A stretch of DNA of 63,014 bases, filler included, from Octopus bimaculoides (lineage: Eukaryota), in NCBI RefSeq assembly GCF_001194135.2. It is 4 parts of 4 records of this genome, joined end to end, with 100 filler letters (N's around TTAATTAATTAA, not from the genome) between each part and the next. Parts side by side here need not be neighbours in the genome. Positions count along the whole stretch, not along the records: positions 1 to 16,909 come from NC_068989.1; 3 more parts are not named here. One strand, written 5' to 3'. Below the pieces are notes generated by a model. It worked only from the letters and a program-made list of their open reading frames with translations, searched no databases and had not been told where the DNA came from. This document shows positions 1-16,953 of this stretch, piece by piece. Within the stretch, counting starts at the first letter, position 1; each line of letters starts with the position of its first letter. The position numbers and the translations under genes were made by a program.

Positions 1-70
1 ATATATGCATATATATATGGAGATAGATACATACATACATACATACATACATATACATATTTATATACAT

Positions 71-792
71 ATCATGTTGGAACATGGAATGTCTTCCTAG
101 TTCTTTGATGCTTTCATCATTGTTTTCTGCAATGTCACAATAAAGCTTTGAATCCATTATTCTCTCAATAAATGTGAGTCCTCCCACACCAGCCGCACTC
201 ATGCATCCCCAAAACATAACACTTCCGCCGCCGTGTTTCACGGTAGGCACGGTGCATTTGTGTCTATTATCTTCACCTGATCGTCGCCATACTCATTTAA
301 TACCATCTGACCAAACATGTTGATTTTATTCTCGTCAGAAAAAAGATTTTTTCCCCAAAATTCCTTCCCCTTACTCACATAGGTTTCGACAAAAGAAAGA
401 TGGCTTGGTTTATGCCTGGTAGTGAGGAGAGGCTTCCTACGAGGAATGGGTCCATGAAGACCACACTGGTTCAAATTTCAGCTAACTGTTTGGGCGGATA
501 CACTCTTTCCACTAACAGAAGACACTTCTTGGGCCAAAGATGAAGCGGTACGACGCCTATCGTCCATCACGCAACGTTGAATGCGGTGAATATCACGGGT
601 AGTTAAAATAGAACGACCTGGACGATGTTTATTGCTTAACCGTCCAGTACCTTTGTACTTCTAAATTACGTTGGCAACTGTGTTTACGCTACGTATTCGT
701 TTGCTAATTAATTTAGATCCTAAATCATTCATGTGCAAAATAAAAATAATTTTCTTCAAATCTTCAGGCAATTCTTTTCCTTTTGGTGCCAT
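71..792 (-). mobile_element. Tc1-family transposase pseudogene, 3'-truncated
   Basis: Manual translation: MAPKGKELPEDLKK...GRLSNKHRPGR...HGPIPRRKPLL...FSDENKIN...PTVKHGGGSVMFWGCM...FQHD. It ends at the second catalytic Asp motif and has in-frame stops. Confidence 0.9.
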
Positions 793-1984
793 TTTAATCA
801 CAATGAAGATTTTCACCACAGTACACAAACTAGAATTCCTGCAGATACAATAACAATGTCCAGTGCAAAAATGGCAGGAGAAATAATTTATTAGAATTGA
901 AATTATCAGTAATATCTCTCTCTCTCTCTCTCTCTCTCTCCCACAGAAGTTTGTTCACCCCTAAAAAAATTCAATAAAATTGCAATTACTCTGATAGTAT
1001 TGAAGAAAATCAGACGAAATTTATACCGAATAAAATATATTATACATGCAAACATTATACATATTTGGAACACAAAACAATAAACATTTTCAAAGATATG
1101 AACGAAATATTAATTTTCGTTATGAATTGGAATTTTGCAAATGATTTGCAAATAAAACTTTGAATCACATTGAAAATCGATATTGAAACTTAAGAGAAAT
1201 GACGTATCTTAAGTACTAAACAACGATCATTACATATATCATATTTATGCATACATACATAACAATGCATTTAAAATGCTATCTGTTACAATGTGTCTTT
1301 ATGACTCGGATTTTTGCAATAGCTGGCTTATCAGGTAACGTCATGACCCAATGATCCAGCGATGCTTAAAAGTCAATCGTAATGTAAAAAAATGTAACCT
1401 CCAGCTCTGAATATATGAATAAATAAATCAATGAAGAAGTATGTATATAATTATCGGTATGTGTATTATTTTTTGCAGCTAGTGTCAACAACAACAACAT
1501 CACGTATTTAATAAGATCTTTAATGAAAAACGTGACGAGTTAAAAGAGCGATTGTAAATAATGTGCCTTATATTTCCCTCGGGTAAATATTATTACAATT
1601 CACACTTCGCCATTATAGTGCAGCTGAAATAAATAATGAAAGAAAATGAATAAACACACAAACAACATACCAACAAATCAATAGATCGTTGGCTTCTTAT
1701 CTTTTCATCTAGGCTTTTTAAACTTCTTTTTCTATTTCTCTATCATCTTCAAGTTTACAGACGACGATGTATTTAGTATATACGTGCGTGTGGAGATAGA
1801 TGTATGTATTAATAGTATATAGTATATGTACATGTGTATATATGTGTGTTTGTGCGATCATATATTATGGATTCTTCAGATGTGTATTTATTCTAACGTA
1901 TCGTACACATTGTCGTAGCTGTCTTTGAAGCTTAAGTATAAATTATATTTATTATTATCACTGTTTTTCAGGTAACTGTGTATA

Positions 1985-2020
1985 TATAAAGAGATAGTTT
2001 GGACCATACGATATTAGCAT
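1985..2020 (+). promoter_or_regulatory. Putative TATA box and initiator of the secreted Pro-rich/6-Cys peptide gene
   Basis: TATAAA at 1985-1990; Inr-like TTAGCA with its A at 2016 (+31); ATG at 2090. Confidence 0.55.
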
Positions 2021-2089
2021 TGACTACTGAAGGAAAATAAGTCCTTTCATTTCACTTCGTCATCGTCGTCTCGCAGTAAATTTGAAGAC

Positions 2090-2240
2090 ATGAAAGCAGT
2101 CATCTTAATTTTATGTGTGATAGCCATCTCTCAAACAAAGGCCTATTACTATAGACATGGTGGCTATCGCCGTATGTACAGGCCCCCGCAACCCCCTATT
2201 CCACCAATTAAACCACCACTTCCACCACCAGTTATTCCAA
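2090..2240 (+). CDS. Exon 1 of secreted Pro-rich/beta-defensin-like peptide (signal peptide + Tyr/Arg-rich + polyproline)
   Basis: MKAVILILCVIAISQTKA|YYYRHGGYRRMYRPPQPPIPPIKPPLPPPVIP (50 codons + 1 nt), followed by a CAA|GTAAGT donor at 2241 (phase 1). Confidence 0.85.
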
Positions 2241-2499
2241 GTAAGTTTTCAGCCTCGGCAACTATCTACATATTATACACACATATATACACGCATACAT
2301 ACAACACATACGCAGGCACAGACACACACACACACACATACATGTACATATATATTCATGCATCTATGCGTGTTTATATATATATNNNNNNNNNNTACAG
2401 GTACATATATATTCATGCATCTATGCGTGTTTATATATATATATATATTTGTGTGTATATATGTGAGTGTATGTATGTATGTATGTTCTCTTACTCATT

Positions 2500-3556
2500 T
2501 TAATTTAGAGTAAATTTTGACCAGCCACCTACATCATAGCAAGGTTGTGAAGGAAAGTATCTTGTTTTAACCATCATCCTTTACTTCTTAAGAAGGTTTT
2601 GCAGATTTTTATAGTTTCAGATATTGTAATCGTTTGTAGCATAGGAATTAAGGATCTGCATCTCTCCCCAAGATTCCAAGTTCAGCCATACTTTGCTGCA
2701 GACTGGGTGGTATATCCTGTTGCTCCAGCAATAATGGGTATGAAGCTGAAAGTGTATATTGGGTTCTGGATTTGCAAACTCCTTATCAATGGTCCATAAA
2801 TGTCCTCTTTTTCATGTGTCTTTATAACCACCATCGTGTCCAAAGGGCAGCTGATTTCTACAACAGAACAAGTCTTTTCTTTGTGCTCCCACACAACGAT
2901 ATCTGGCCGGTTATGTTTTAACTTAGTGGCTGTTTTCATTTTTAAGTTCCACCAAATATTCTTTTGACCTCTCGGTGTCAATATAGTCGACTTCGTTTGT
3001 ATTTTCTTTTTTGTTATACTGTTCCAGATTGTTCTGGCCACCGAATCATGCTCCATGGGATAATAATATTTGAAAGACATTTTCGCGCAGTTGACAATAA
3101 TGTGGTTGATGTCTTCGGTCTTCAGCTTTAGCCTACATTTATTGTCTGTCAACGTCTTCTGCCTTTTATGCTGTAGATGTTTGGTGGGGAAACATGTTCT
3201 AGAATTGCATGGATGTAGCATTCAAAGTGGGATATCATAAACTTGTCGTTACACCTTGTCAAGCTTTTCACATGATCAATCCCTTCTATGGTTTGTGTTT
3301 TACATGCCAAGTACCCATGTACTAGCTTATCAGTAAACTGGTCCATTTTTTTCTGTTGTTCTGATAAATAGATTTTAACAACGCTCCTTGGAGAAAGATA
3401 TGTATCAGTTCTTTTTCTATACCTCTCCTGAAGTTCATTAGCTATCTTAATTATGTTGTTGGCTTCTTGGTCATAAACTTTAGCAAGATAGTTACGGGTC
3501 ACTTTTCTCTGCAAATCGTTCTGGTTTAGTCGGCCCCAAACTATATTAGATGACAC
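2500..3556 (-). mobile_element. R4/Dong-clade non-LTR retrotransposon 3' fragment (zinc knuckle + restriction-like endonuclease)
   Basis: ORF 2682-3221: CRL...EDINHIIVNC...HDSVA...IWWN...KHNRPDIVVW...VVEISCP...EKEDIYGPL...IPIIAGATG. Confidence 0.9.
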
Positions 3557-3620
3557 TTGTCCAAGGTGTCATGCAAAGAACTATGTTCTTGGGAAACAGA
3601 CTTCTTACCACACAGCCATA
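3553..3620 (-). mobile_element. tRNA-derived SINE head fragment
   Basis: Reverse complement matches the tggctgtgtggtaagaag...accttggacaagtgt head seen at 51112 and 62686. Confidence 0.6.
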
Positions 3621-3630
3621 TATGTACGTA

Positions 3631-3880
3631 TATGTTCTCTTTCTGTTTCTAATGTAGAATAAATTTTGACTGGCCACCTACTTAGTAAGCAAGGTTGTGA
3701 AGGAGTGATGCTAAATATGTGTGGCAATGCTGCTGGGTTCATGATGAAACCAGGACTTATCTACAAGTCCGTGAACCCGAGGGCCTTCAAAAATTGGTTT
3801 CTCCAATGCTTCATCCCTCAAGCAAAAGATCATCGAGGACAAGGGATACAAGCGGGAACAGGTCTTGTTATAATCATTAT
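3631..3880 (-). mobile_element. Second short R4/Dong 3'-end fragment
   Basis: About 70 bp (3631-3703) is a diverged copy of 2482-2553, the 3' UTR side of the first R4 piece. The minus strand also reads LKALGFTDL. Confidence 0.45.
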
Positions 3881-4144
3881 CCTTTAAACATTGTATGCAT
3901 GNNNNNNNNNNNNNNNNNNNNNNNNNNNNNNNNNNNNNNNNNNNNNNNNNNNNNNNNNNNNNNNNNNNNNNNNNNNNNNNNNNNNNNNNNNNNNNNNNNN
4001 NNNNNNNNNNNNNNNNNNNNNNNNNNNNNNNNNNNNNNNNNNNNNNNNNNNNNNNNNNNNNNNNNNNNNNNNNNNNNNNNNNNNNNNNNNNNNNNNNNNN
4101 NNNNNNNNNNNNNNNATATATATATATATATATATATACATATA

Positions 4145-4250
4145 CAGTGTACCCCCGCTTATTCGCCGTTCGGCATTCGCGGTCCCGGTTATTCGCAGAA
4201 CAAATATTTGTTCGCGGAACCGTAAATATCGTTCGCAATTTTTTGAGACT
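4145..4250 (+). mobile_element. Possible pogo/Tigger-like transposon end
   Basis: TA followed by CAGTGTACCCCCGCTTATTCGC, a CpG-rich start typical of such termini. No partner end seen. Confidence 0.3.
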
Positions 4251-4283
4251 TCTTTCGTGGTAATATCTCTCTCTCCCTCTCTC

Positions 4284-4314
<31 letters not shown>

Positions 4315-4329
4315 GTATAGATTACTGTA

Positions 4330-5145
4330 TCTAGTGGTAATGCAAACTAAAATTAAAGTTGTTGTTGAGAAAAAGTTTGCTGACATGGAGGATTGGAAGG
4401 CATCTGAATATTGGGAAAGAGTAACTTGTATCATGACGATCCTCATCGGGCGTCAAAATCCCAACATCACAACTGCTGCTCAATGCTCTGTGAATACTAT
4501 AAAGGCTGTAAGGCATGACATAGACAGTTGCAACGGAAACTACGAAGTCGTGGCCAGCAGAAGGAAGCACAGCAAGCATTCTGACTGCGTCTGCAAGTCG
4601 GATATTTAACCCCACATCTTTGAACAGGACCTTAAACTCCATTCAGACGGCTATGTGAAGCTGCTGGAGACTGGTCAATCTTTGGCTTTAGGGAGTTGCT
4701 GCTAGATGGCCAAATGTGCGGCAGCAGGATTCGGCTCTTGGCCATACTTTCGAAAAGAGTCAGAAATGACTGTTGGAGAATTTCAACGATTTCACCAGTC
4801 CAAGTTTTTGACCTTCTGTTGTAATCTCATGGATTACTATGTGTGGAGCACGGTTGAGAAAGACACCAACCGCTCTACCTGCGACACCAAGACAAAGCTA
4901 GTGGCCAAGATCAAGGTGTTCGAAGACCTTCCCAGAGACACAGTGAGGAACTTATGCGCCAGGTTCCAGAGCTGTCTTGAGGTGGTGGTGCAAGCTGAGG
5001 GTGGATCATTTGAGAAAAACTGTTATCTCCCGGCCATAATCTAGTTGATACTTTATGGGTTTTTTAAATACTTGTATTTTGGGATAACATATTGTGTTTT
5101 CTTTACCTTTTATGCAAAAATGTTAAGATTAACTCGAACACCCTG
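4330..5145 (+). mobile_element. maT/mariner-like transposon remnant with internal deletion
   Basis: Fragments LHSDGYVKLLET, RQQDSALGHT, NLMDYYVWSTVEK, CARFQSCLEVVVQAEGGSFEK; right end CTCGAACACCCTG followed by TA (5146-5147). Confidence 0.8.
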
Positions 5146-5631
5146 TATACACCCCTCTCTTTTTGCTATGTACAGACCTACTTTTTATATGCAAAGTTTC
5201 TTTATTGTATTTCTGGAAGGGCGATTCTAACTGCGAATTCTGTGGTTTTGATTTATTGAGAATAATCCATGAGTGGTTTCCTTGGATACATATTGATATT
5301 CATAGTTGCTATAGTTGCTTCCATTGCTGTTGTTGTTATAGCAGATGTTGCTGCTGTTTAACCTTTATTACAATCCTAATGGCATAGACTTTTGATAAAA
5401 AGCATTCCAGCTAGTAGCAACCAGTCTTTCCAGGGGTATTTTGGACAACTGAGCACTAATCCCGATGTTAAATTCAATCAAATTAACTCAATACAATACA
5501 GTCAGGTCTTTTTTTATGCGTGAAAAGCTAATATAAATAACACGGTTTCACCCGTTGGTATTTTTGTTATATTTGGTTCTCAGAAATCTGAGTTAAATAG
5601 ATCTAACCCTTTACCTTATTCTCCCATACAG

Positions 5632-5762
5632 CCCCACTCTGCCCAGGAAATGTTGCCGGTAAATTGCTTTTCTGCTCTCCGAACTGTGCCAAACCAAACT
5701 TTGTTCCTGTAAGTGGAGTTCCTGGATGCTACCCTGGATTAACTTGTTGCACTCAAGCATAA
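5632..5762 (+). CDS. Exon 2 of secreted peptide: 6-Cys beta-defensin/big-defensin-like domain
   Basis: Acceptor ccttattctcccatacAG (5630-5631). The phase-1 join gives T-PLCPGNVAGKLLFCSPNCAKPNFVPVSGVPGCYPGLTCCTQA-stop (TAA 5760-5762); Cys spacing C-x10-C-x3-C-x13-C-x5-CC. Confidence 0.85.
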
Positions 5763-6164
5763 AAATTATGTAAGTAAAATATGTATATTTTTACATTTGG
5801 GCTGCCATGGAAACAAACCTAGTAAATTTGTTTCTCTTAATGCTTTTTCTCTTCTTTAATAAAGGTTGTATCCCGAAACTTTACATTCTCTTGTTCCTTC
5901 TATTCACATATTCTTTTTATTGTCCACTTCTATTGCTGTCGTTCAACTTCATATTTCTACTGTTTTACATTCACATGTTTTTCTCGTCTAATTCCATGTA
6001 TTATTTGTTTGTCAATTTATTGCCTTATAATCTTACTAGTTTTCTGTGATTTTTATCTACATATGTAATATAATATACATACATGTGTATGTGAAGGTGC
6101 GTGCGTGTGCGTGTGTGTGCGTATGTGTGTGCGTGTAAGTGTCAGTCTGTCTGTCTGTGTAATC

Positions 6165-6403
6165 AAAGGTCCGTTTTGAGCCATAGGCTCATACGGCCAG
6201 TTTCCCGGATTCTATGGCGTATATATTCCTCACTGGACTCAATACCCGTCCATCGCAGGATCATTCAAATTCACCAGCTAACTAAGCTGGAGCAACGTAA
6301 TATGATGTACTTTCAACAAGAACACAACGTGTCTCCCGGACCAGGAATTGAAATCACGATCTTTTGATCATGAGTGCAGCACCCTAACCACTAAGCCGTG
6401 CGC
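6165..6403 (-). mobile_element. tRNA-derived SINE
   Basis: Minus-strand head GCGCACGGCTTAGTGGTTAGGGTGCTGCACTCATGATC...ATTTCAATTCCTGG has A-box and B-box-like motifs; the body is shared with 45283-45595. Confidence 0.75.
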
Positions 6404-6410
6404 TTGTACG

Positions 6411-6474
<64 letters not shown>

Positions 6475-7373
6475 NNNNNNNNNNNNNNNNNNNNNNNNNN
6501 NNNNNNNNNNNNNNNNNNNNNNNNNNNNNNNNNNNNNNNNNNNNNNNNNNNNNNNNNNNNNNNNNNNNNNNNNNNNNNNNNNNNNNNNNNNNNNNNNNNN
6601 NNNNNNNNNNNNNNNNNNNNNNNNNNNNNNNNNNNNNNNNNNNNNNNNNNNNNNNNNNNNNNNNNNNNNNNNNNNNNNNNNNNNNNNNNNNNNNNNNNNN
6701 NNNNNNNNNNNNNNNNNNNNNNNNNNNNNNNNNNNNNNNNNNNNNNNNNNNNNNNNNNNNNNNNNNNNNNNNNNNNNNNNNNNNNNNNNNNNNNNNNNNN
6801 NNNNNNNNNNNNNNNNNNNNNNNNNNNNNNNNNNNNNNNNNNNNNNNNNNNNNNNNNNNNNNNNNNNNNNNNNNNNNNNNNNNNNNNNNNNNNNNNNNNN
6901 NNNNNNNNNNNNNNNNNNNNNNNNNNNNNNNNNNNNNNNNNNNNNNNNNNNNNNNNNNNNNNNNNNNNNNNNNNNNNNNNNNNNNNNNNNNNNNNNNNNN
7001 NNNNNNNNNNNNNNNNNNNNNNNNNNNNNNNNNNNNNNNNNNNNNNNNNNNNNNNNNNNNNNNNNNNNNNNNNNNNNNTGTGCTTGTTGCACTGCATGAC
7101 CCAGACGCCTCTCATCTTCCAGCTGCCTTACTTGTTGTTCACGTAGCTTCCGCTGTTCTTGTTCATATATGTATGCATGTATTTGTGTGTATGTGTATAT
7201 GTATTCACATTTGGGTATATGTGTGTGTATACATATGTATGTATATATGCATATGTGTGTGTATTTATATGTATGCATACGTGTGTATATATATATATAT
7301 ATATATGCGTGTATATATGTATATATATGTATGTATATATATGTATGCATATATATGTATGTATATGTGCGTA

Positions 7374-7406
<33 letters not shown>

Positions 7407-7569
7407 GTATATTTTTTGTTTGTTTATATGTAGGAAAATAACTATGTGAGCTAGCATGATCTCCCCAAGCCCGCTTCCCAAACCAATATTAAAAAATACA
7501 TTTCTTTCAACAAACATTCCAAAACTAACCTTATGTATATTTCTTTCTCTCTATTATCATCCCCTTTTT

Positions 7570-7800
7570 ATCAAAAGACATGTATCTTACACCTCATTAA
7601 CACCACCACCACCACAGGATACACACACCTAAACTCATCTTTAACATGGAAAGTTACCGAAGCTTCTCTTTATAAAATTAAGACAGTTGATTCAGCCATA
7701 AGAAAATTTGAAAAACAGCTGACCATTATATTTTTCACCAAAGGTCAACTATTCAAATGGAACCAACAGGAGGACATTTTCACAAGCCCTTCATAAAACA
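7570..7800 (+). mobile_element. Penelope-like element, degraded endonuclease C-terminus
   Basis: SSLTWKVTEASLYKIK...FEKQLTIIFFTKGQL...EDIF resembles the end of PLE GIY-YIG regions. Confidence 0.4.
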
Positions 7801-8488
7801 CTCGCCACCTCCCAACTCCACCCTCAATCAATTATCTTGTCTTTACCATTCACTGTTTTCTTTCAGCTCTTGTTCATAAAAACTCCTTCACTCACACACT
7901 TATTACTAACAAGCCCCACCTCCCACTCCAGACATCCAGATCTCTTATATGTAGAATCACACAGCACAACAAACCCTCAGATCAGTTTGACAACCGCCAC
8001 CGACGAATGCGAGAAGGTTCTCCAGAAAAGTTAACAAAGAATATTTTAAATATCTATCTCCCCACCGAAGTTAACAAAGAACTTACTAGATCTACAAGCT
8101 AAACGGTAAAATTATATTATTAGAAAATTAAACTGATTAGAACTACTAGTGAAGTCATTCTTTTCTTTTCCTTTTTGAAAGANNNNNNNNNNNNNNNNNN
8201 NNNNNNNNNNNNNNNNNNNNNNNNNNNNNNNNNNNNNNNNNNNNNNNNNNNNNNNNNNNNNNNNNNNNNNNNNNNNNNNNNNNNNNNNNNNNNNNNNNNN
8301 NNNNNNNNNNNNNNNNNNNNNNNNNNNNNNNNNNNNNNNNNNNNNNNNNNNNNNNNNNNNNNNNNNNNNNNNNNNNNNNNNNNNNNNNNNNNNNNNNNNN
8401 NNNNNNNNNNNNNNNNNNNNNNNNNNNNNNNNNNNNNNNNNNNNNNNNNNNNNNNNNNNNNNNNNNNNNNNATACACATAAAATATAA

Positions 8489-10078
8489 ATGAGTAACAGG
8501 AAGATACAGGTGTCAATCCATTACGGCCGTTTCCAACGACTCCTTTGATTAATGAAAACATTACATTTGTGTAAAGAAACCGTTTTCGTCAGAAGAATTC
8601 ATAAACTTCGGAATAAAGGACATTCAGAATGATTTAACATAGTTTAAAACCCACGGAGCAAAAACGTTCACATTGATTCTGCTACTATTTCAGTTGGCAG
8701 AATGGATTTACCAGAATAGTGTATATTTGGTCAGAACAGAGAAAATTAGGGGTTAGTAGAGGGAAGGAATAATTTACTCTAGTGATCCAGATACCTATAC
8801 TTCTAACAAGAAAGGAGGGTGCGGCTTCAATAGTCCAGATCTATTTATTAAGAAGTTGTTTAATGCCTACTGGTCAGTGGTAAGAAAATGAATTGTGCTC
8901 AGGTCAACCTACTAAATAATCAAGGTCGTATGTGATGGAACCAATACACAGGTTTTATCTCTGCAAATGGGCAAGGCAGAGGAAGTGAGGGATTGGAAAG
9001 GGATGATAAAGAGAATGAAAAAAGAACGCAAGCTGATCCAACCGTTATTAATTACCATATTAGTGAAGGAAGACTTTGAAAGATAATGGAATAAGGGTTA
9101 TATGGGAAAACCCTAAACTATGAGTGGGAAACATTGCTTTGGGATAAAATGGACTACTAAAATTTAGCATAGTTACAATATTATAGTAATACAATAAATT
9201 AGAAATTAAACATGGGTAAAGAAAATTATAAGTGTACTTGAAATTGTAAGAAAAAGAGATACATTAAGATATGAGATATAAGAAAACTAAAATTCAAAGA
9301 AATGTAGAGTATATAAATAATAATAGGGTAAGCATGAAGATATATAAAATTTATAAAAAGAGCTGCCAATAAAATAAAAGTAAAATATTATTTGAACATA
9401 TGCCTTAGATCCGGGAGGCTGACGATAAGACATATTAAAACTTAGGCATTAAATATAAGGTAATTAATTTAAAATTATTTAAAATATATAAAGGAGTGTA
9501 TTCAGATACAAAAGTTTAAAATTTAAAAACTTAAGCTTGTAAAGGAATATAATATATATAAAAATATAAAATATACAACGAGATATGCAAAAAAAATATA
9601 TAAAAAGATTTTAAAATATATTAAAAAATTATTCTAAAAATTATAAAAAGGTAAAAATATATAAAAATTATAAAACGGTTATTAATAAAAATAAAACAAT
9701 AAAAATAAAAATAACAAAAGAATAATAACAATAAAATTAAAAACGAAAATAAAGGGTTTATATATTATATACAATAAAAAATATATAAAAGAATAAAGGA
9801 CCTAAAGGGAGATTGAAATCTGATATTATTACTAACCAAAATAAAAAATATAGTCAAAAAAATATACCTAAGTTTTTATGCGAAAAGTATAAATCCACTA
9901 AAAATAAAAATACAAAATATTTTATATCAACTATATATGAAAGTTATTAGTCTTGAACCGAGATAGATACATGACGAAAACGGTTTCTTTACAAAGATGT
10001 AATGTTTACATTAATTAATCAAAGGAGTCGCTGGAAACGGCCGTAATGGATTGAGACCTGTACCTTTCTGTTACTCAT
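8489..10078. repeat. Inverted repeat, ~105-bp arms (8489-8591 / 9972-10078) around a 1.4-kb A-rich interior
   Basis: ATGAGTAACAGGAAGATACAGGTGTCAATCCATTACGGCCGTTTCCAACGACTCCTTTGATTAAT...GAAACCGTTTTCGTCA is matched by the reverse complement of 9972-10078. Confidence 0.85.
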
Positions 10079-10332
10079 ATTTTATTTACCTATCTCGGAA
10101 TCTGCCCTTCGTAAATATTATGGACAGTATATTTGATATAAAGTACATGTCTGAATAGCTAAGAGCGGATTTCTTCACTCAACTAGGTCTAACTGACTAG
10201 ACACACTGCAATAATATCATTCAGCAAGTACTTATGTACCAAGTTTGATATTTAATTAATATTTTTGTGTGTGTATATTATTCCAACCTAGCGAAGTGCC
10301 TTAATTTAAGAGTCTAATTCAACTGAATCTTA

Positions 10333-10377
<45 letters not shown>

Positions 10378-11965
10378 ATCGTCAACACCTCTTGTGTCCA
10401 TCTCCTATGTTCCTGCCTTTTGGCTTTCATTTTATACACGCCAGCTCAATTTGATTCGTTCTCAGTTGAAAGACACCTGTTATTTTTTTGTTGTTTGTAT
10501 TCGTAATTATGTACCATGTTCTCAAATTGTTGTTTCTCTTGTCCGCCTTGTATCGTCTGTCTGTCCGAATGTTTTTGTCTATTGTGTTTTTGGTCCATTT
10601 GTGTGTGTGTGTATGTGTGTGTGTGTGTGTGTGTGTGCGTGCGTGCGAGTGCGTGTGAGTATGAATACGTGTACACCTACGACACTTGATTTGGATCGAA
10701 CGAGGTAAAAAGATGGTGAGAGTTTTATAGCTTTCTGCTGCCCTCACGTTTATCTTCTTTTCTCTCACTTGACTGACAAAATATCTGCTTGGTTTCAATG
10801 CCAATTCAAGGCTACAGCATGCCTATGATTTTTGTACGTTATCAACGCCAATATTAGCTATAAACTCATTTGAAATAATATAGTTTGTTTGAATTATATA
10901 TATATATGACTGGAGTGTATAATTGTTTTAGGTGTGTATTTAGTCACAAGAGACATCGATTCTCTCTCAGTCCCCTTACCCTTGACCTAACGGAGCAGCT
11001 AAAGAAGTAGTGTTGCATTGGTATTTGACAGACATTCGTTTTAAGCTGACTGGACTGGAGCAACGTGAAATGATGAGCCCTGATCAAGGAGACATCAATA
11101 TTGGTTGACAAGTATAGTCAGTTGATACCAGTGGCAAACTAGTATTGTCAGTTGATAAGATTAGCTGATCAATATTATAAATTGACAAGACTGGCTGATT
11201 AGGGTTATGTATTGACAATATTGTCAATTGAGATAGAATTGTCGATTGGCAAAACGGTCTTGTGTTTATGGAGCCACCTCATTACATTTACAGCTGTTCC
11301 ACTCCACTTACAAAGTTACAACTCCCAGAAAAGCACGAACATCAATATTTTTTCACATACGCACACACATTTAGTAACCATCAGGCCACCTATCCACGCG
11401 CATACAGCAGACACGTGTGCGCGTATACACTCTTCATTTGTTTCATATTTTTAACTATTCTTTAGTCCAAGGAAAAGAGAGCAAGCCCATAATTTTTATG
11501 AAATTGAAGTTGACGTATTACTTAAACTCTGTAGGTTGATACCTAAGCGTGAAAGTGCCAGTGGGATGCAGATTTGCAGAAGAAAGATTAACCAAATGTT
11601 GCACTATAGAATTAGAGTGCTCAGTAGGTGTAGGCGGGATTTCGAAAAGAGGAGTGATGGGCGAATAAGGTGGGAAGCGGCTTATCTAAGTCGTTAGGAA
11701 ATACTTAAATAACTTTTAAACGTTCCAAGACAAATGTGTTTAAATTTCTTGACCTTTCCAAAGACATTAAAATAATTTCGAAGCCGTACATGCTGGGCAA
11801 GTGGCTTGATCTGAGACCATATGTTAAAGCTAAACCAATTAAATTACAAAACAGACATTCTATCCTTATCACACACACACGCATGCATAAATATATGACT
11901 GTATATATCTATACATATACATAGATATCTACACATGCGCACGCACACACGCAGGTACGCACACA

Positions 11966-12006
<41 letters not shown>

Positions 12007-12010
12007 GCCT

Positions 12011-12203
12011 TTTATTTATTTCAGTCGTTAAGCTGAGGCCGTGCTGGGGCACCGCCTAGAAGAATTTTAGTCGAACGAATCGACCCCAGCACTTTTTTTT
12101 AAAGTCTGGTACTTATTTTATCAGCCTCTATAACCGAACCGCTACGTTACAGAGAAGTAAACACACCAACACCGGTTGTCGAACGTTGATGGGAGACAAA
12201 CAC
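12011..12203 (-). mobile_element. SINE 3' half
   Basis: Reverse complement of the 14681-14892 / 51300-51496 SINE 3' half. Confidence 0.8.
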
Positions 12204-12275
12204 AGATACAAACACAAACACACACACTCATACACGAAACATAATGCATACACACACACATACACACATGCACAC

Positions 12276-12311
<36 letters not shown>

Positions 12312-13548
12312 CAAAAAAGGGATTTAAAAATCCTGGCAGATATCAATAAAGCACTCAGTGTTAAAAGAATTTGGTTCACAATATTCAACAATTACACATC
12401 CATGAATGTAAGTAGAATAAATCCTCGTGCGTGACAGGTACGTCCAGAAATCCTTTAACAAAATTTTGAGAAATTCAAAATATTTGACACTAAAAGATCC
12501 GTAGAGAAAATTACATCTTTATTATAGATCTGTAACGGCAATTGTAACGGTTGGTTAAGGTGGTGTCAGTGGTCACCAGCTGTAACGGTATGTATTATGA
12601 TATCTATTGGTTACCATTTATAAGGATAAGTATAATTGTAACGGGTGTTGATATAGCAGATGTGCAAGATGAAAGAAGAACAGTGATCGAAGTTATAAAG
12701 AAACATTTATTTACTGTTACTTAATGTAATGCCATGCCTCGACGGGCAAGGTGTGTATAATAATATAAATGGAAATGTATGCGAGGTTAAGAGAGTTAAT
12801 TTTTATTTGTATAATTTGTCTGCATGTTCTCATTGTAGTTGTAAGAAGATTGAGATAGGGTAATGTTGTAGAGAAAAGAAAGTGAGCTAATAAAAGTTAG
12901 ACGAGTCGAGGGAAGTTGTGTCTCATAGTCGCTGGTTATAGCATTCTTTCTCCCTCTGGCCGTTTGTTTCAAGTGGCTGTCTGCTTGTGGCCATATCTAG
13001 TTGGTTTCTGTTCGCTAACTGATTTTGCCTTACCAAATTCTAGTATTTATAACCATGCAAAACCAGTCAGAAGGAGAGACATATTGTTGAGGACAACAGA
13101 TTTCGTTGGGGGTACCTGTTATATTAATTCTAAATTTTCATGGCCTAGAAGCGGTTAGAAGGGTCAAGTGGCCAATTTATAACTCAACTAAGCAAACGCC
13201 ATGTGTTCATTTTATTGCTAACAACTTAATATTTCTCTGAGGGAAAAGTGCTGTTGAAATATTATGGGAAATCTGCTGATTCAGGTTCGAATCTACTCTA
13301 TGTCTAAATGAAGACCACTACAGATCTCACCTTATAAAGCCGACAATTCTTTTTATTGCATTAACATACATACATACATACATACATATACATTAGTTGG
13401 CCCCGTGCTATAATACAAGTCTCTTTCTTAAGGTGCCATGCAGAGGAAGAGAATCCAAAACCATGTGCTTGGAAAACAAACTTTTTACCACACAGTCACG
13501 CGTAGGTCTATACATGCATATATATATATATATATATANNNNNNNNNN

Positions 13549-13690
13549 GTCTGATATGATATTTCGGAATAATATTCCTTCTTCAGATATTCTTAGATGG
13601 AGACGCTGCTATAACCAGTTTTCTAACGGCTTAGCGACTCCATCTAAGAATATCAAAGAAGGAATATTATTCCGAAATATCATATCAGAC
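13549..13690. repeat. Near-perfect 142-bp hairpin (MITE-like)
   Basis: Arms 13549-13607 and 13633-13690 differ by about 2 substitutions and 1 indel; 25-nt loop; TA follows the right end. Confidence 0.9.
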
Positions 13691-13772
13691 TATGGATGAC
13701 TAAATTACAACAGTTATTATAATCCATTGCTTGTATTATAGTGCATTGTTGTACCATTCAAAACTTTTTATT

Positions 13773-13814
<42 letters not shown>

Positions 13815-14624
13815 NNNNNNNNNNNNNNNNNNNNNNNNNNNNNNNNNNNNNNNNNNNNNNNNNNNNNNNNNNNNNNNNNNNNNNNNNNNNNNNNNNNNNN
13901 NNNNNNNNNNNNNNNNNNNNNNNNNNNNNNNNNNNNNNNNNNNNNNNNNNNNNNNNNNNNNNNNNNNNNNNNNNNNNNNNNNNNNNNNNNNNNNNNNNNN
14001 NNNNNNNNNNNNNNNNNNNNNNNNNNNNNNNNNNNNNNNNNNNNNNNNNNNNNNNNNNNNNNNNNNNNNNNNNNNNNNNNNNNNNNNNNNNNNNNNNNNN
14101 NNNNNNNNNNNNNNNNNNNNNNNNNNNNNNNNNNNNNNNNNNNNNNNNNNNNNNNNNNNNNNNNNNNNNNNNNNNNNNNNNNNNNNNNNNNNNNNNNNNN
14201 NNNNNNNNNNNNNNNNNNNNNNNNNNNNNNNNNNNNNNNNNNNNNNNNNNNNNNNNNNNNNNNNNNNNNNNNNNNNNNNNNNNNNNNNNNNNNNNNNNNN
14301 NNNNNNNNNNNNNNNNNNNNNNNNNNNNNNNNNNNNNNNNNNNNNNNNNNNNNNNNNNNNNNNNNNNNNNNNNNNNNNNNNNNNNNNNNNNNNNNNNNNN
14401 NNNNNNNNNNNNNNNNNNNNNNNNNNNNNNNNNNNNNNNNNNNNNNNNNNNNNNNNNNNNNNNNNNNNNNNNNNNNNNNNNNNNNNNNNNNNNNNNNNNN
14501 NNNNNNNNNNNNNNNNNNNNNNNNNNNNNNNNNNNNNNNNNNNNNNNNNNNNNNNNNNNNNNNNNNNNNNNNNNNNNNNNNNNNNNNNNNNNNNNNNNNN
14601 NNNNNNNNNNNATACATACATACA

Positions 14625-14659
<35 letters not shown>

Positions 14660-14680
14660 GTGTGTGTGTGTGTATGTTTG

Positions 14681-14892
14681 TGTGTCTGTGTTTGTACCCC
14701 AACATCGCTTCACAACCGATGCTGGTGTGTTTACGTCCACGTAACTTAGCGGTTCGGCAAAAGATATCGATAGAATAAGTACTAGGCTTACAAAGAATAA
14801 GTCCTGGGGTCGATTTGCTCGACTAAAGGCGGTGCTCCAGCATGGCCGCAGTCAAATGACTGAAACAAGTAAAAGGGTAAAAGAGTAAAAGA
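14681..14892 (+). mobile_element. SINE 3' half
   Basis: catcgcttcacaaccgatgctgg...aacttagcggttcggcaaaag...ggggtcgatttgctcgactaaaggcggtgctccagcatggccgcagtc...gtaaaag tail; multiple copies in the window. Confidence 0.85.
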
Positions 14893-15165
14893 TATATCGT
14901 CGACTTGAACTATAGTGTTTAAATAATTGGTTATTGTAAAGTAGGGAGAATGAAAGACAAAACGGTTTGCTGAGCTGTAACTTCGAAGTTAAGTCTGCTC
15001 ACTTAGAATTACAAATATTGTAGTAACATACTGGGTTCAAAACAGTCATTAAAAAGAAGGATCTGCACTCCGCCAGCCCGCCCGCATACCCCCTTATTAT
15101 TGTCTTTATTTGTATTTTAATAATTATTCTTTAGAAAAATTATAATTCTGACTTTCTATTTTCAG

Positions 15166-15270
15166 GCAGAAAACAATTGAAATATTTGAAAGTGGTTGAT
15201 AATATTCAGAACCAATGATGGACGGATAGAAAGGAATAATGCACAATAAAAGCACTTGATTCATGTATAA
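15166..15270 (+). other. Candidate terminal (3' UTR) exon of the peptide gene
   Basis: Acceptor actttctattttcAG (15164-15165) and AATAAA at 15245-15250; pairs with an unused GTAAGT donor at 5770. Confidence 0.35.
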
Positions 15271-15621
15271 ACCTCGTTATTGACTTATGTTTACAACTCT
15301 CTCTCTTTCTTTCTCTCTCTCTCTCTTTCGCTCTCTCTCTCCCCTTCTCTGTCTCCCTCTTTCTCTCCCACTGTCTGTCCCTTTGTGTGTATATATACAT
15401 ATATATATATTTATATATAAATGTTATATATATATACATATATATATGTTATATATATATACATATATACGTATACAAACACATACACACATATATTTAT
15501 GATATATATATATATATGTATATATATATGTATATATATATATATATATATATACATACATACATACATACATACATCATATATACATATATACATACAT
15601 ACATACATATATGTATATATA

Positions 15622-15669
<48 letters not shown>

Positions 15670-15734
15670 AAACTTACTTGTAAATGGATGCGTCGCGTTC
15701 AATTAATAAATAATATAATATATATATGCATGCA

Positions 15735-16047
15735 TGCATATATGGGTACAGGACGTCACCTACGGTGCAAATAGCATAAAATATTTAAACAAACGAGTTA
15801 AATACGTAAACAACGAGTAAAATGGAAAATAGGACAAGTAAAAACTGAGAAAGGAACCTTCATCAGTTGTCGGTTGTCTATGCTCAAAATGAGGAGTAGA
15901 TAGGTAGCCGGCAACTGATGAAGGGTCCTTTCTCTGTGTTGACTTGTCCTGTTTTCAATTTTTTCTCGTTGTTTACGTATTTAACTCGTTTGTTTACGTA
16001 TTTCATGTTATTTGCACCGTTGGTGACGTCCTGTACCCATATATGCA
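15735..16047. repeat. 313-bp foldback hairpin (~146-bp arms, 20-nt loop)
   Basis: 15735-15880 is the reverse complement of 15901-16047 with scattered mismatches. Confidence 0.9.
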
Positions 16048-16406
16048 TATATATATTTACACATATATATATTACATATTTATTACATATATATGTGTGT
16101 GTATGTGTGTATGTATGTATGTATGTATTTATGTATGCATGTATGCATACACACAGACACTCACATGCACATACACACATGTATGTATGTATGTATGTAT
16201 GTATGTGGAGAGCAATCGCCATATTTCATTTCATAACTGCCATCTCTGAAGAGCGATGGGTTACATAATCGGGCTGTTATCTAAAACTCCGTTGAACCCC
16301 TAGTGCGAAACCGATTGGTAAGATCGGTTGTAATAAACCGTTATCCGTAGTTACCCTCTATATATTCGAAGAGATATTTACATCTGTATCATAACTGACT
16401 TCAAAG

Positions 16407-16840
16407 ATGGTAAGAAGCTTACTTCTCAACCACGTGGTTCCAGGTTCAGTCCCACTGCGTGGCACCTAGGGCAAATGTTTTTTGCTATAGCCTCTGGGTG
16501 ACCAAAGCCTTGTGAATGGATTGTGTAGCCGGAAAGTGAAAGAAGAGCGATGTGTATATATATGTGTGTGTATATGTGTGCACGTATGAGTGTATGCCTG
16601 TATGTGTTTATGTATTTATGTGTGTGTGTTTGTGTCTTTATGTCTGTGTTTGTTCCACCATCATCGCTTGACAACTGGTGTTGGTGCATTTATATCCTTT
16701 TAACTTAGCGATTCGCCAAAAGAAACCGATAAGATAAGTACTAGGCTTTAAAAAATAAACTCTAGGGTCTACTAAAACCCTACAAGGCGATGCTCCAATA
16801 TGGCCGCAGTCAAATAACTGAATCAAGTAAAAGGGTAAAG
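16407..16840 (+). mobile_element. Near full-length tRNA-derived SINE with internal (TG/TA) microsatellite
   Basis: Head ggtaagaagcttacttctcaaccacgtggttccaggttcagtccc; same two-part body as 51112-51496. Confidence 0.85.
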
Positions 16841-16953
16841 GAATATATACATATATATATACATTTATATGGATAAATATATATTCATATATATATATAT
16901 ATATATATANNNNNNNNNNNNNNNNNNNNNNNNNNNNNNNNNNNNNNNNNNNN

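Follow-up and report, generated by a model that had tools for sequence, protein, structure and literature searches.

What kind of product is encoded at positions 2090-5762 of this stretch of Octopus bimaculoides DNA, and to which known family, if any, does it belong? The stretch (63,014 nucleotides (nt) of four joined parts from RefSeq assembly GCF_001194135.2) is called the window here, and the locus lies in its first part, the piece at positions 1-16,909 from NC_068989.1. Two coding exons join there into a 93-residue protein with a predicted signal peptide, a cationic Tyr/Arg-rich head, a polyproline arm and a C-terminal domain with six cysteines in the order C-C-C-C-CC. An earlier inspection of the bare DNA, the sequence-only reading, had described a secreted cationic peptide with a Pro-rich arm fused to a six-Cys domain, and this layout is correct. 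The locus is probably a real orphan gene with two coding exons. As to its role, our preferred reading, which we hold tentatively, takes the gene as real and restricted to its lineage; its secreted cationic peptide, stabilised by disulfides, would most probably serve in host defence.

Starting from the ATG at 2090-2092, the joined exons form a coding sequence of 282 nt, whose product, obtained by direct reading and by scripted translation, is MKAVILILCVIAISQTKAYYYRHGGYRRMYRPPQPPIPPIKPPLPPPVIPTPLCPGNVAGKLLFCSPNCAKPNFVPVSGVPGCYPGLTCCTQA, followed by a stop codon. It is identical to the 93-residue string that the sequence-only reading had derived from a donor at 2241 and an acceptor at 5631, both in phase 1. 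Our recount of the composition agrees with the earlier one as well: residues 19-93 make up 75 amino acids, among them six Cys and seven Lys plus Arg, with no Asp or Glu. The TATA element claimed upstream is found as a TATA-like consensus match. The features of the gene, all on the plus strand, are as follows.

1981-1990, plus strand: TATA-like TATATATAAA, 100-109 nt 5' of the ATG, a consensus match from a regular-expression scan and a candidate core promoter.
2090-2143, plus strand: start codon and predicted signal peptide, residues 1-18, MKAVILILCVIAISQTKA (translation, hydropathy and AlphaFold helix).
2144-2240, plus strand: remainder of exon 1, with the Tyr/Arg-rich head YYYRHGGYRRMYR and then the polyproline arm PPQPPIPPIKPPLPPPVIP (translation and composition).
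2241-5631, plus strand: phase-1 intron of nominally 3,391 nt, with a GTAAGT donor and a polypyrimidine tract and CAG acceptor.
5632-5762, plus strand: coding exon 2, (T)PLCPGNVAGKLLFCSPNCAKPNFVPVSGVPGCYPGLTCCTQA and the TAA stop, carrying the six-Cys domain C-x10-C-x3-C-x13-C-x5-CC (translation).
5858-5863, plus strand: polyadenylation signal AATAAA, separated from the stop codon by 95 nt; no other AATAAA occurs between the stop and position 6200.

Exon 1 (2090-2240) is 151 nt long, and its last base, 2240, opens the split codon 51; exon 2 (5632-5762) is 131 nt long, including the TAA at 5760-5762. The donor reads CAA/GTAAGT, with the intron beginning at 2241, and the acceptor reads CCTTATTCTCCCATACAG/CC, with its AG at 5630-5631; both junctions are in phase 1. 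The start codon has a purine, G, at position -3. GC content is 0.44 and 0.47 in the two exons, against 0.38 in the intron and 0.35 in the window. An open second exon is unremarkable by itself, because 71 of the 610 AG acceptors 3' of the donor keep at least 43 codons open in the correct phase. In the scan of these 610 acceptors, a compact, non-repetitive six-Cys domain arises from the one at 5632 only; the other Cys-rich products are translations of TG/CA microsatellites or long open reading frames (ORFs) derived from repeats.

Two runs of N interrupt the assembly within the gene, at 2386-2395 (10 N) and 3902-4115 (214 N). The first lies 145 nt 3' of exon 1 and the second 1,516 nt 5' of exon 2. 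Since both sit inside the intron, frame and phase do not depend on their length; the true length of the intron is uncertain, gap sizes being estimates. The 10-N gap is flanked by two 47-nt stretches, 2339-2385 and 2396-2442, that agree at 46 of 47 positions. They look like an unmerged overlap, which supports continuity here: one copy of the flank together with the gap is probably an assembly artefact, a short tandem duplication being the alternative. A comparison of the flanks of the 214-N gap found no shared sequence, and a symmetric exon may be hidden in that gap, or a scaffolding misjoin may have occurred there.

Is the protein new? A word-indexed search of 5.8 billion proteins returned a single match, identical at 100% over the full length: UniRef A0A0L8GEX8_OCTBM, which is UniProt A0A0L8GEX8, an "Uncharacterized protein" of O. 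bimaculoides. An exact look-up of this entry gives a cluster of one member. The sequence is already public, but uncharacterised and unnamed, and the gene that had been called hidden is hidden only to a bacterial-style ORF list. No paper naming A0A0L8GEX8 came up in our literature search, and the literature on cephalopod antimicrobial and defensin peptides yielded no named family with a Pro-rich arm and six-Cys layout. In Pfam neither the whole protein nor the mature peptide nor the isolated domain had a match with E up to 10; a phmmer search of all PDB chains gave no match; and when each exon was searched by tBLASTn in the remainder of the window, no paralogue came up. The earlier statement that the layout belongs to no recognised named family is borne out, as none claims the peptide in Pfam, in PDB or among 1.84 billion proteins.

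The leader looks like a signal peptide. Its hydrophobic region AVILILCVIAI has a mean Kyte-Doolittle hydropathy of 3.6, and T-K-A occupies positions -3 to -1, so that cleavage is predicted after Ala18 by the -3/-1 rule; predicted cleavage after Ser14 is a possible alternative. For the structure we used AlphaFold2 on the single sequence, without an alignment, in two independent runs, one with the full protein and one with the domain alone. It places a helix over residues 2-22, with a predicted local distance difference test (pLDDT) score of 83.

The isoelectric point (pI) of the mature peptide is 9.4 and its net charge about +7; it has no acidic residue, and 19 Pro and 6 Tyr in 75 residues. Five of its seven basic residues fall within the first 13 positions, in YYYRHGGYRRMYR. 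Residues 19-50 are predicted as coil, with pLDDT of about 60; these 32 residues count 12 Pro, 5 Tyr and 5 Lys plus Arg, with a pI of 10.3 and a grand average of hydropathy (GRAVY) of -0.99. A dibasic pair, RR, stands at residues 27-28. By analogy with big-defensin prodomains, which end in RR or KR (PMC7203481), it could be a processing site; it does not follow the furin consensus, because its P4 residue is Gly.

To what, then, should the cysteine domain be compared? Our comparison set consists of the C-domains of 37 published big defensins, from which we built a hidden Markov model (HMM); residue conservation was read from a 26-sequence big-defensin alignment, A1. The spacings in the 37 C-domains are 4-14, 3, 12-14, 4-7 and 0, with the mode at 6-3-13-4-0. 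The octopus spacing, 10-3-13-5-0, falls inside this range, and its x3 and x13 loops equal the modal values. The HMM scores the octopus domain at 6.6 bits, which 0.2% of full shuffles reach (p about 0.002).

The gene structure points in the same direction. The split codon A/CC lies three residues before Cys1, so the phase-1 intron is directly 5' of the cysteine domain, and an intron in phase 1 at the 5' boundary of the part coding for this domain is common to big-defensin and beta-defensin genes (PMC7203481). The specificity of this feature is limited, because such introns are common after the leader regions of secreted proteins.

The predicted fold is also consistent with a trans-defensin, a fold of three antiparallel beta strands and three disulfides that pair C1-5, C2-4 and C3-6. 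The full protein has a mean pLDDT of 72 and its C-domain 78-79, with strands at 63-66, 74-76 and 88-92; the domain alone reaches 76, with the same three strands. The first strand is at Cys2, the second between Cys3 and Cys4 and the third on the CC pair, an order expected of beta-defensins. A three-stranded trans-defensin scaffold of this kind is described in PMC7203481.

Big defensins, known from molluscs, horseshoe crabs and amphioxus (PMC7203481), thus resemble the octopus protein in being secreted precursors with a six-Cys C-domain that ends in CC and has x3 and x13 loops, in having a phase-1 intron just 5' of the Cys exon and, possibly, an upstream dibasic site, and in belonging to a group whose N-terminal domain is known to have been replaced or lost in mollusc lineages. 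Clams, for example, have non-canonical big defensins without the N-terminal domain (PMC7203481), and the existence of such derivatives in other molluscs speaks for our preferred reading. There are also differences. The octopus domain has x10 for its first loop and x5 for its last, where x6 and x4 are usual; the beta-alpha-alpha-beta N-domain, the Gly of G-x-C2, the Arg after Cys2 and the Glu are missing; and profile tests, of low power by their controls, found no significant sequence similarity. The definition of a big defensin includes a hydrophobic N-terminal domain upstream of the linker (PMC7203481), with the order beta1-alpha1-alpha2-beta2, whereas residues 19-50 are Tyr/Arg/Pro-rich and hydrophilic, as their GRAVY value shows, and are predicted as coil. 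We also considered identity with the canonical octopus big defensin and rejected it: the Octopus sinensis sequence (Table S1 of PMC7203481; C-domain SHVCGNGGWCRLHCRQFEDIDWKRKNICGAYNCCQ) is unrelated outside the cysteines and stems from a separate gene.

Vertebrate beta-defensins, crustacean panusins and other trans-defensins share with the octopus protein the six cysteines in the order C-C-C-C-CC and a mature domain on its own exon after a phase-1 intron; the three beta strands predicted for the octopus domain are arranged correspondingly with respect to the cysteines. Beta-defensins differ in their loops, about x6-x4-x9-x6, while the octopus domain is of low charge and follows a 32-residue Tyr/Arg/Pro arm.

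Another comparison is with chimeric peptides of crustaceans. Penaeidins of shrimp, and arasin and hyastatin of crabs, are likewise secreted peptides in which a Pro-rich cationic N-terminal part, with a start of the Y-x-GGY type, precedes a Cys-rich C-domain. Penaeidins have two CC pairs in a helical Cys domain; the octopus framework has one CC pair. As for membership, there is no Pfam match at E up to 10 and no penaeidin chain among the results of the PDB search. Any likeness to penaeidins would be convergent, because the phylum differs.

Within molluscs, the oyster offers a further analogy. As cited in PMC7551771, the Pro-rich oyster peptide Cg-Prp acts in synergy with the defensin Cg-Def. 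Pro-rich and disulfide-rich, defensin-type modules would thus be combined in mollusc host defence in both animals, if the octopus peptide has such a role. Unlike the octopus modules, which form one chain, the oyster modules are products of two different genes, and Cg-Def belongs to the cis-defensins (CS-alpha-beta). The octopus protein should be filed neither with the big defensins nor with the beta-defensins nor with the penaeidins, since defining features that we looked for are absent from it; by analogy, it may nonetheless work like any of the three.

How would it do so? In our preferred reading, the 18-residue leader would be removed in the endoplasmic reticulum, and the 43-residue C-terminal domain would oxidise to form three disulfides and a small three-stranded beta domain of the trans-defensin type. 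The N-terminal part would stay disordered; the positive charge would reside mainly in its Tyr/Arg cluster, and a stiff arm in polyproline-II form would act as the spacer that links head to knot. The cationic, aromatic head could then bind anionic microbial surfaces, and the disulfide knot would provide resistance to proteases and a second binding surface. Such a peptide would be an extracellular host-defence effector, functionally similar to penaeidins or to the oyster Pro-rich peptide and defensin fused in one chain. This defensin-like role is the leading guess, plausible but unproven. The Cys exon may derive from an ancient exon of the big-defensin or beta-defensin type. A bolder proposal, which we regard as improbable, makes the gene the founder of a cephalopod-restricted host-defence family, with a defensin-type Cys exon kept behind its ancestral phase-1 intron and joined to a new Tyr/Arg-polyproline leader exon.

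A number of results weigh against a defensin-like effector. The same score of 6.6 bits is reached by 15% of shuffles in which the cysteines are held fixed (p = 0.15), so the likeness to big defensins lies in the cysteine framework alone, and hhalign assigns a probability of 1.2% against the big-defensin profile. In alignment A1 the Gly two residues before Cys2 is invariant, and conservation is 90% or more for the Arg next to Cys2 on its C-terminal side and for the Glu four residues past Cys3; at these three columns the octopus domain has Leu, Ser and Asn (LLFCS, CAKPN). It contains 2 Lys and no Arg, has a net charge of about +1.3 and, at a GRAVY of +0.42, is hydrophobic. Known defensin domains are strongly cationic, whereas this one is nearly neutral and the charge sits in the N-terminal head. 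Ribosome-targeting Pro-rich peptides of the apidaecin, oncocin and Bac7 type carry dense Arg-Pro (PRP) motifs; these are absent from the octopus arm, whose Pro stretch RPPQPPIPPIKPPLPPPVIP includes one Arg and one Lys in 20 residues and looks like a polyproline-II spacer rather than an Arg-Pro pharmacophore. A Foldseek search of PDB with both AlphaFold models found no usable match, though Foldseek is weak on knots of 40 residues, and a scan for kappaB-like motifs found 0 matches where 0.75 were expected.

The remaining points on this side concern the gene itself. An exhaustive phmmer search of 1.84 billion representative proteins returned the protein alone, and exact look-up in assembly collections gave no contig encoding the exact product and no transcript record. 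With no homologue found, conservation and purifying selection are not demonstrable. Because the deposited model derives from this assembly too, it is no independent check of the join across the 214-N gap.

Several of these negatives carry less weight than they seem to. As controls, we submitted published trans-defensins to the same tests. Pfam-A, which includes Defensin_big and Defensin_beta_2, misses the canonical big defensin of O. sinensis at E up to 10, and also a non-canonical big defensin of Dreissena at the same limit. Human beta-defensin 2 (its sequence entered by hand), which shares the cysteine pairing of the big-defensin C-domain, obtains an hhalign probability of 0.3% against the same profile, below that of the octopus domain. 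Negative family-profile tests therefore carry little weight, because they miss or underscore true trans-defensins; and since Pfam misses published big defensins, profile-based annotation would systematically miss the trans-defensins of cephalopods. "No homologue" here means no annotated homologue and does not prove that other cephalopods lack one. The lack of homologues is weak evidence in any case, because the protein collection holds little cephalopod sequence: a repeat-like ORF in the intron of this gene finds one relative only among the 5.8 billion proteins.

Three points of the sequence-only reading can be set against these results. The label "beta-defensin-like" is backed by a spacing within the big-defensin range and by the phase-1 intron; against it stand a similarity confined to the cysteines, the missing hallmark residues, a barely cationic domain and the empty Foldseek search. 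Structure prediction, which it had suggested, produced the three strands in beta-defensin order, without a PDB neighbour by Foldseek. The homologue search that it had also suggested was run on protein databases, where the protein found itself only, and on the window, where tBLASTn of the exons found no paralogue.

If the host-defence reading falls, what else could the protein be? The strongest competitor, still unlikely in our view, replaces the immune effector by a secreted protein of structural, matrix or adhesive function, for which the lining of the suckers, the egg case, the beak or radula and mucus are candidate sites. Cross-linking (by di-Tyr or DOPA) and extension would then be the tasks of the Tyr-rich head and of the polyproline arm, and the Cys knot would be a cross-linking or chitin-binding module. 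The composition, 6 Tyr and 19 Pro per 75 residues, fits this, as does a nearly neutral, hydrophobic Cys domain, and the YYYRHGGY head recalls the Tyr/Gly/His-rich structural proteins of cephalopods. The status of lineage-restricted orphan fits too: in the 2015 octopus genome paper, many genes of cephalopod skin and suckers are reportedly of this kind. However, the protein is very short and has no repeats, where structural proteins usually carry long tandem repeats; no chitin-binding or structural Pfam family matched it; and a framework with a terminal CC is typical of trans-defensin effectors and toxins.

It is likewise unlikely, and a little more so, that the locus is not functional at all, whether as a chance combination of a hydrophobic ORF that starts with ATG, a GT and a remote AG, taken up by ab initio prediction, as a misjoin across the 214-N gap, or as a young, unexpressed proto-gene. 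There is no homologue and no transcript record, 71 of 610 acceptors open at least 43 codons, the intron is rich in repeats and gaps, and the UniProt model comes from the same assembly. Against these stands the coincidence of a TATA-like element, a start codon with purine at -3, a predicted signal peptide, a perfect GTAAGT donor and a strong polypyrimidine/CAG acceptor with an even number of cysteines in a recognised framework, an AATAAA 95 nt past the stop and raised exon GC. AlphaFold, moreover, gives a confident, compact fold from a single sequence, and the scarcity of cephalopod proteins in the collection makes the missing homologues weak evidence.

Several toxin families share the C-C-C-C-CC framework. 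If the protein were a toxin, pheromone or other signalling peptide, its beta-defensin-like knot would have an ion channel or a receptor as its target, in the manner of crotamine, sea-anemone toxins and platypus defensin-like peptides, and its precursor might be cut at RR27-28, with loss of a short propeptide. Such a peptide would suit the low-charge, hydrophobic Cys domain and the dibasic site after a 10-residue stretch, but no toxin matched in PDB or Pfam and the RR site, with Gly at P4, is not a furin consensus; we consider this reading doubtful.

The interest of the secreted host-defence peptide lies in how little is known from its lineage. One study states that neither homology searches nor immune challenge had turned up any gene-encoded antimicrobial peptide in cephalopods (PMC7551771). 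They are almost unknown in this group, and those reported are the unannotated big-defensin orthologues that Gerdol et al. (2020) noted in Octopus genomes (PMC7203481). Once verified, a secreted peptide with a polyproline arm and a beta-defensin-like knot would constitute a new design in mollusc immunity and would be one more case to show how big-defensin genes give rise to beta-defensin-like peptides by exon recombination. A real and defensive peptide would be a variant of the chimeric Pro-rich/Cys-rich peptides and of the beta-defensin-like derivatives of big-defensin genes. Under the proposal of a cephalopod family, which we regard as improbable, it would record an independent molluscan transition from big defensin to beta-defensin-like peptide and would be, among cephalopods, the first chimeric antimicrobial peptide of Pro-rich/defensin-like type to be encoded by a gene. 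As a structural or gland protein, or as an unexpressed model, it would be an ordinary lineage-specific orphan.

The intron and flanks of the gene are rich in repeats, and microsatellites border the gaps. Between 4334 and 5044 the intron contains two ORFs of 91 and 112 residues on the plus strand, like the gene itself, and their Pfam matches are all sub-threshold. For the second, the 5.8 billion proteins include one relative only: P0002, from an ENA contig of 512 bp, 76% identical over 58% of the query. The ORF is probably a repeat remnant and no part of the peptide gene. Just 5' of exon 2, at 5163-5387 on the plus strand, a 74-residue ORF with 13 Cys (containing CYSCFHCCCCYSRCCCCLTF) is found without splice or signal context; it looks like low-complexity sequence, not a second Cys-rich exon.

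Scans of the window for tRNAs and Rfam families found none; no second gene was found in the piece, nor any gene-like feature in 5.9-16.9 kb. Four more gaps, at 6475-7078, 8183-8471, 13539-13548 and 13815-14611, account for about 10% of the piece, and (CA)n, (TA)n and TATG-type microsatellites lie along their edges.

Possible traces of mobile elements occur on both strands. Two minus-strand ORFs of 179 and 135 residues, at 2682-3556, overlap at 3149-3221 in different frames; their Pfam matches are sub-threshold and implausible only (CBM_3, HepT-like), and the pair looks to be a single mobile-element ORF, decayed and frame-shifted, inside the intron. Sub-threshold matches to HTH_Tnp_Tc3_2 at 238-474 on the minus strand (E = 0.0037) and to DDE_1 at 3666-3887 on the plus strand (E = 0.025) suggest remnants of Tc1/mariner-type and pogo-type transposons, respectively.

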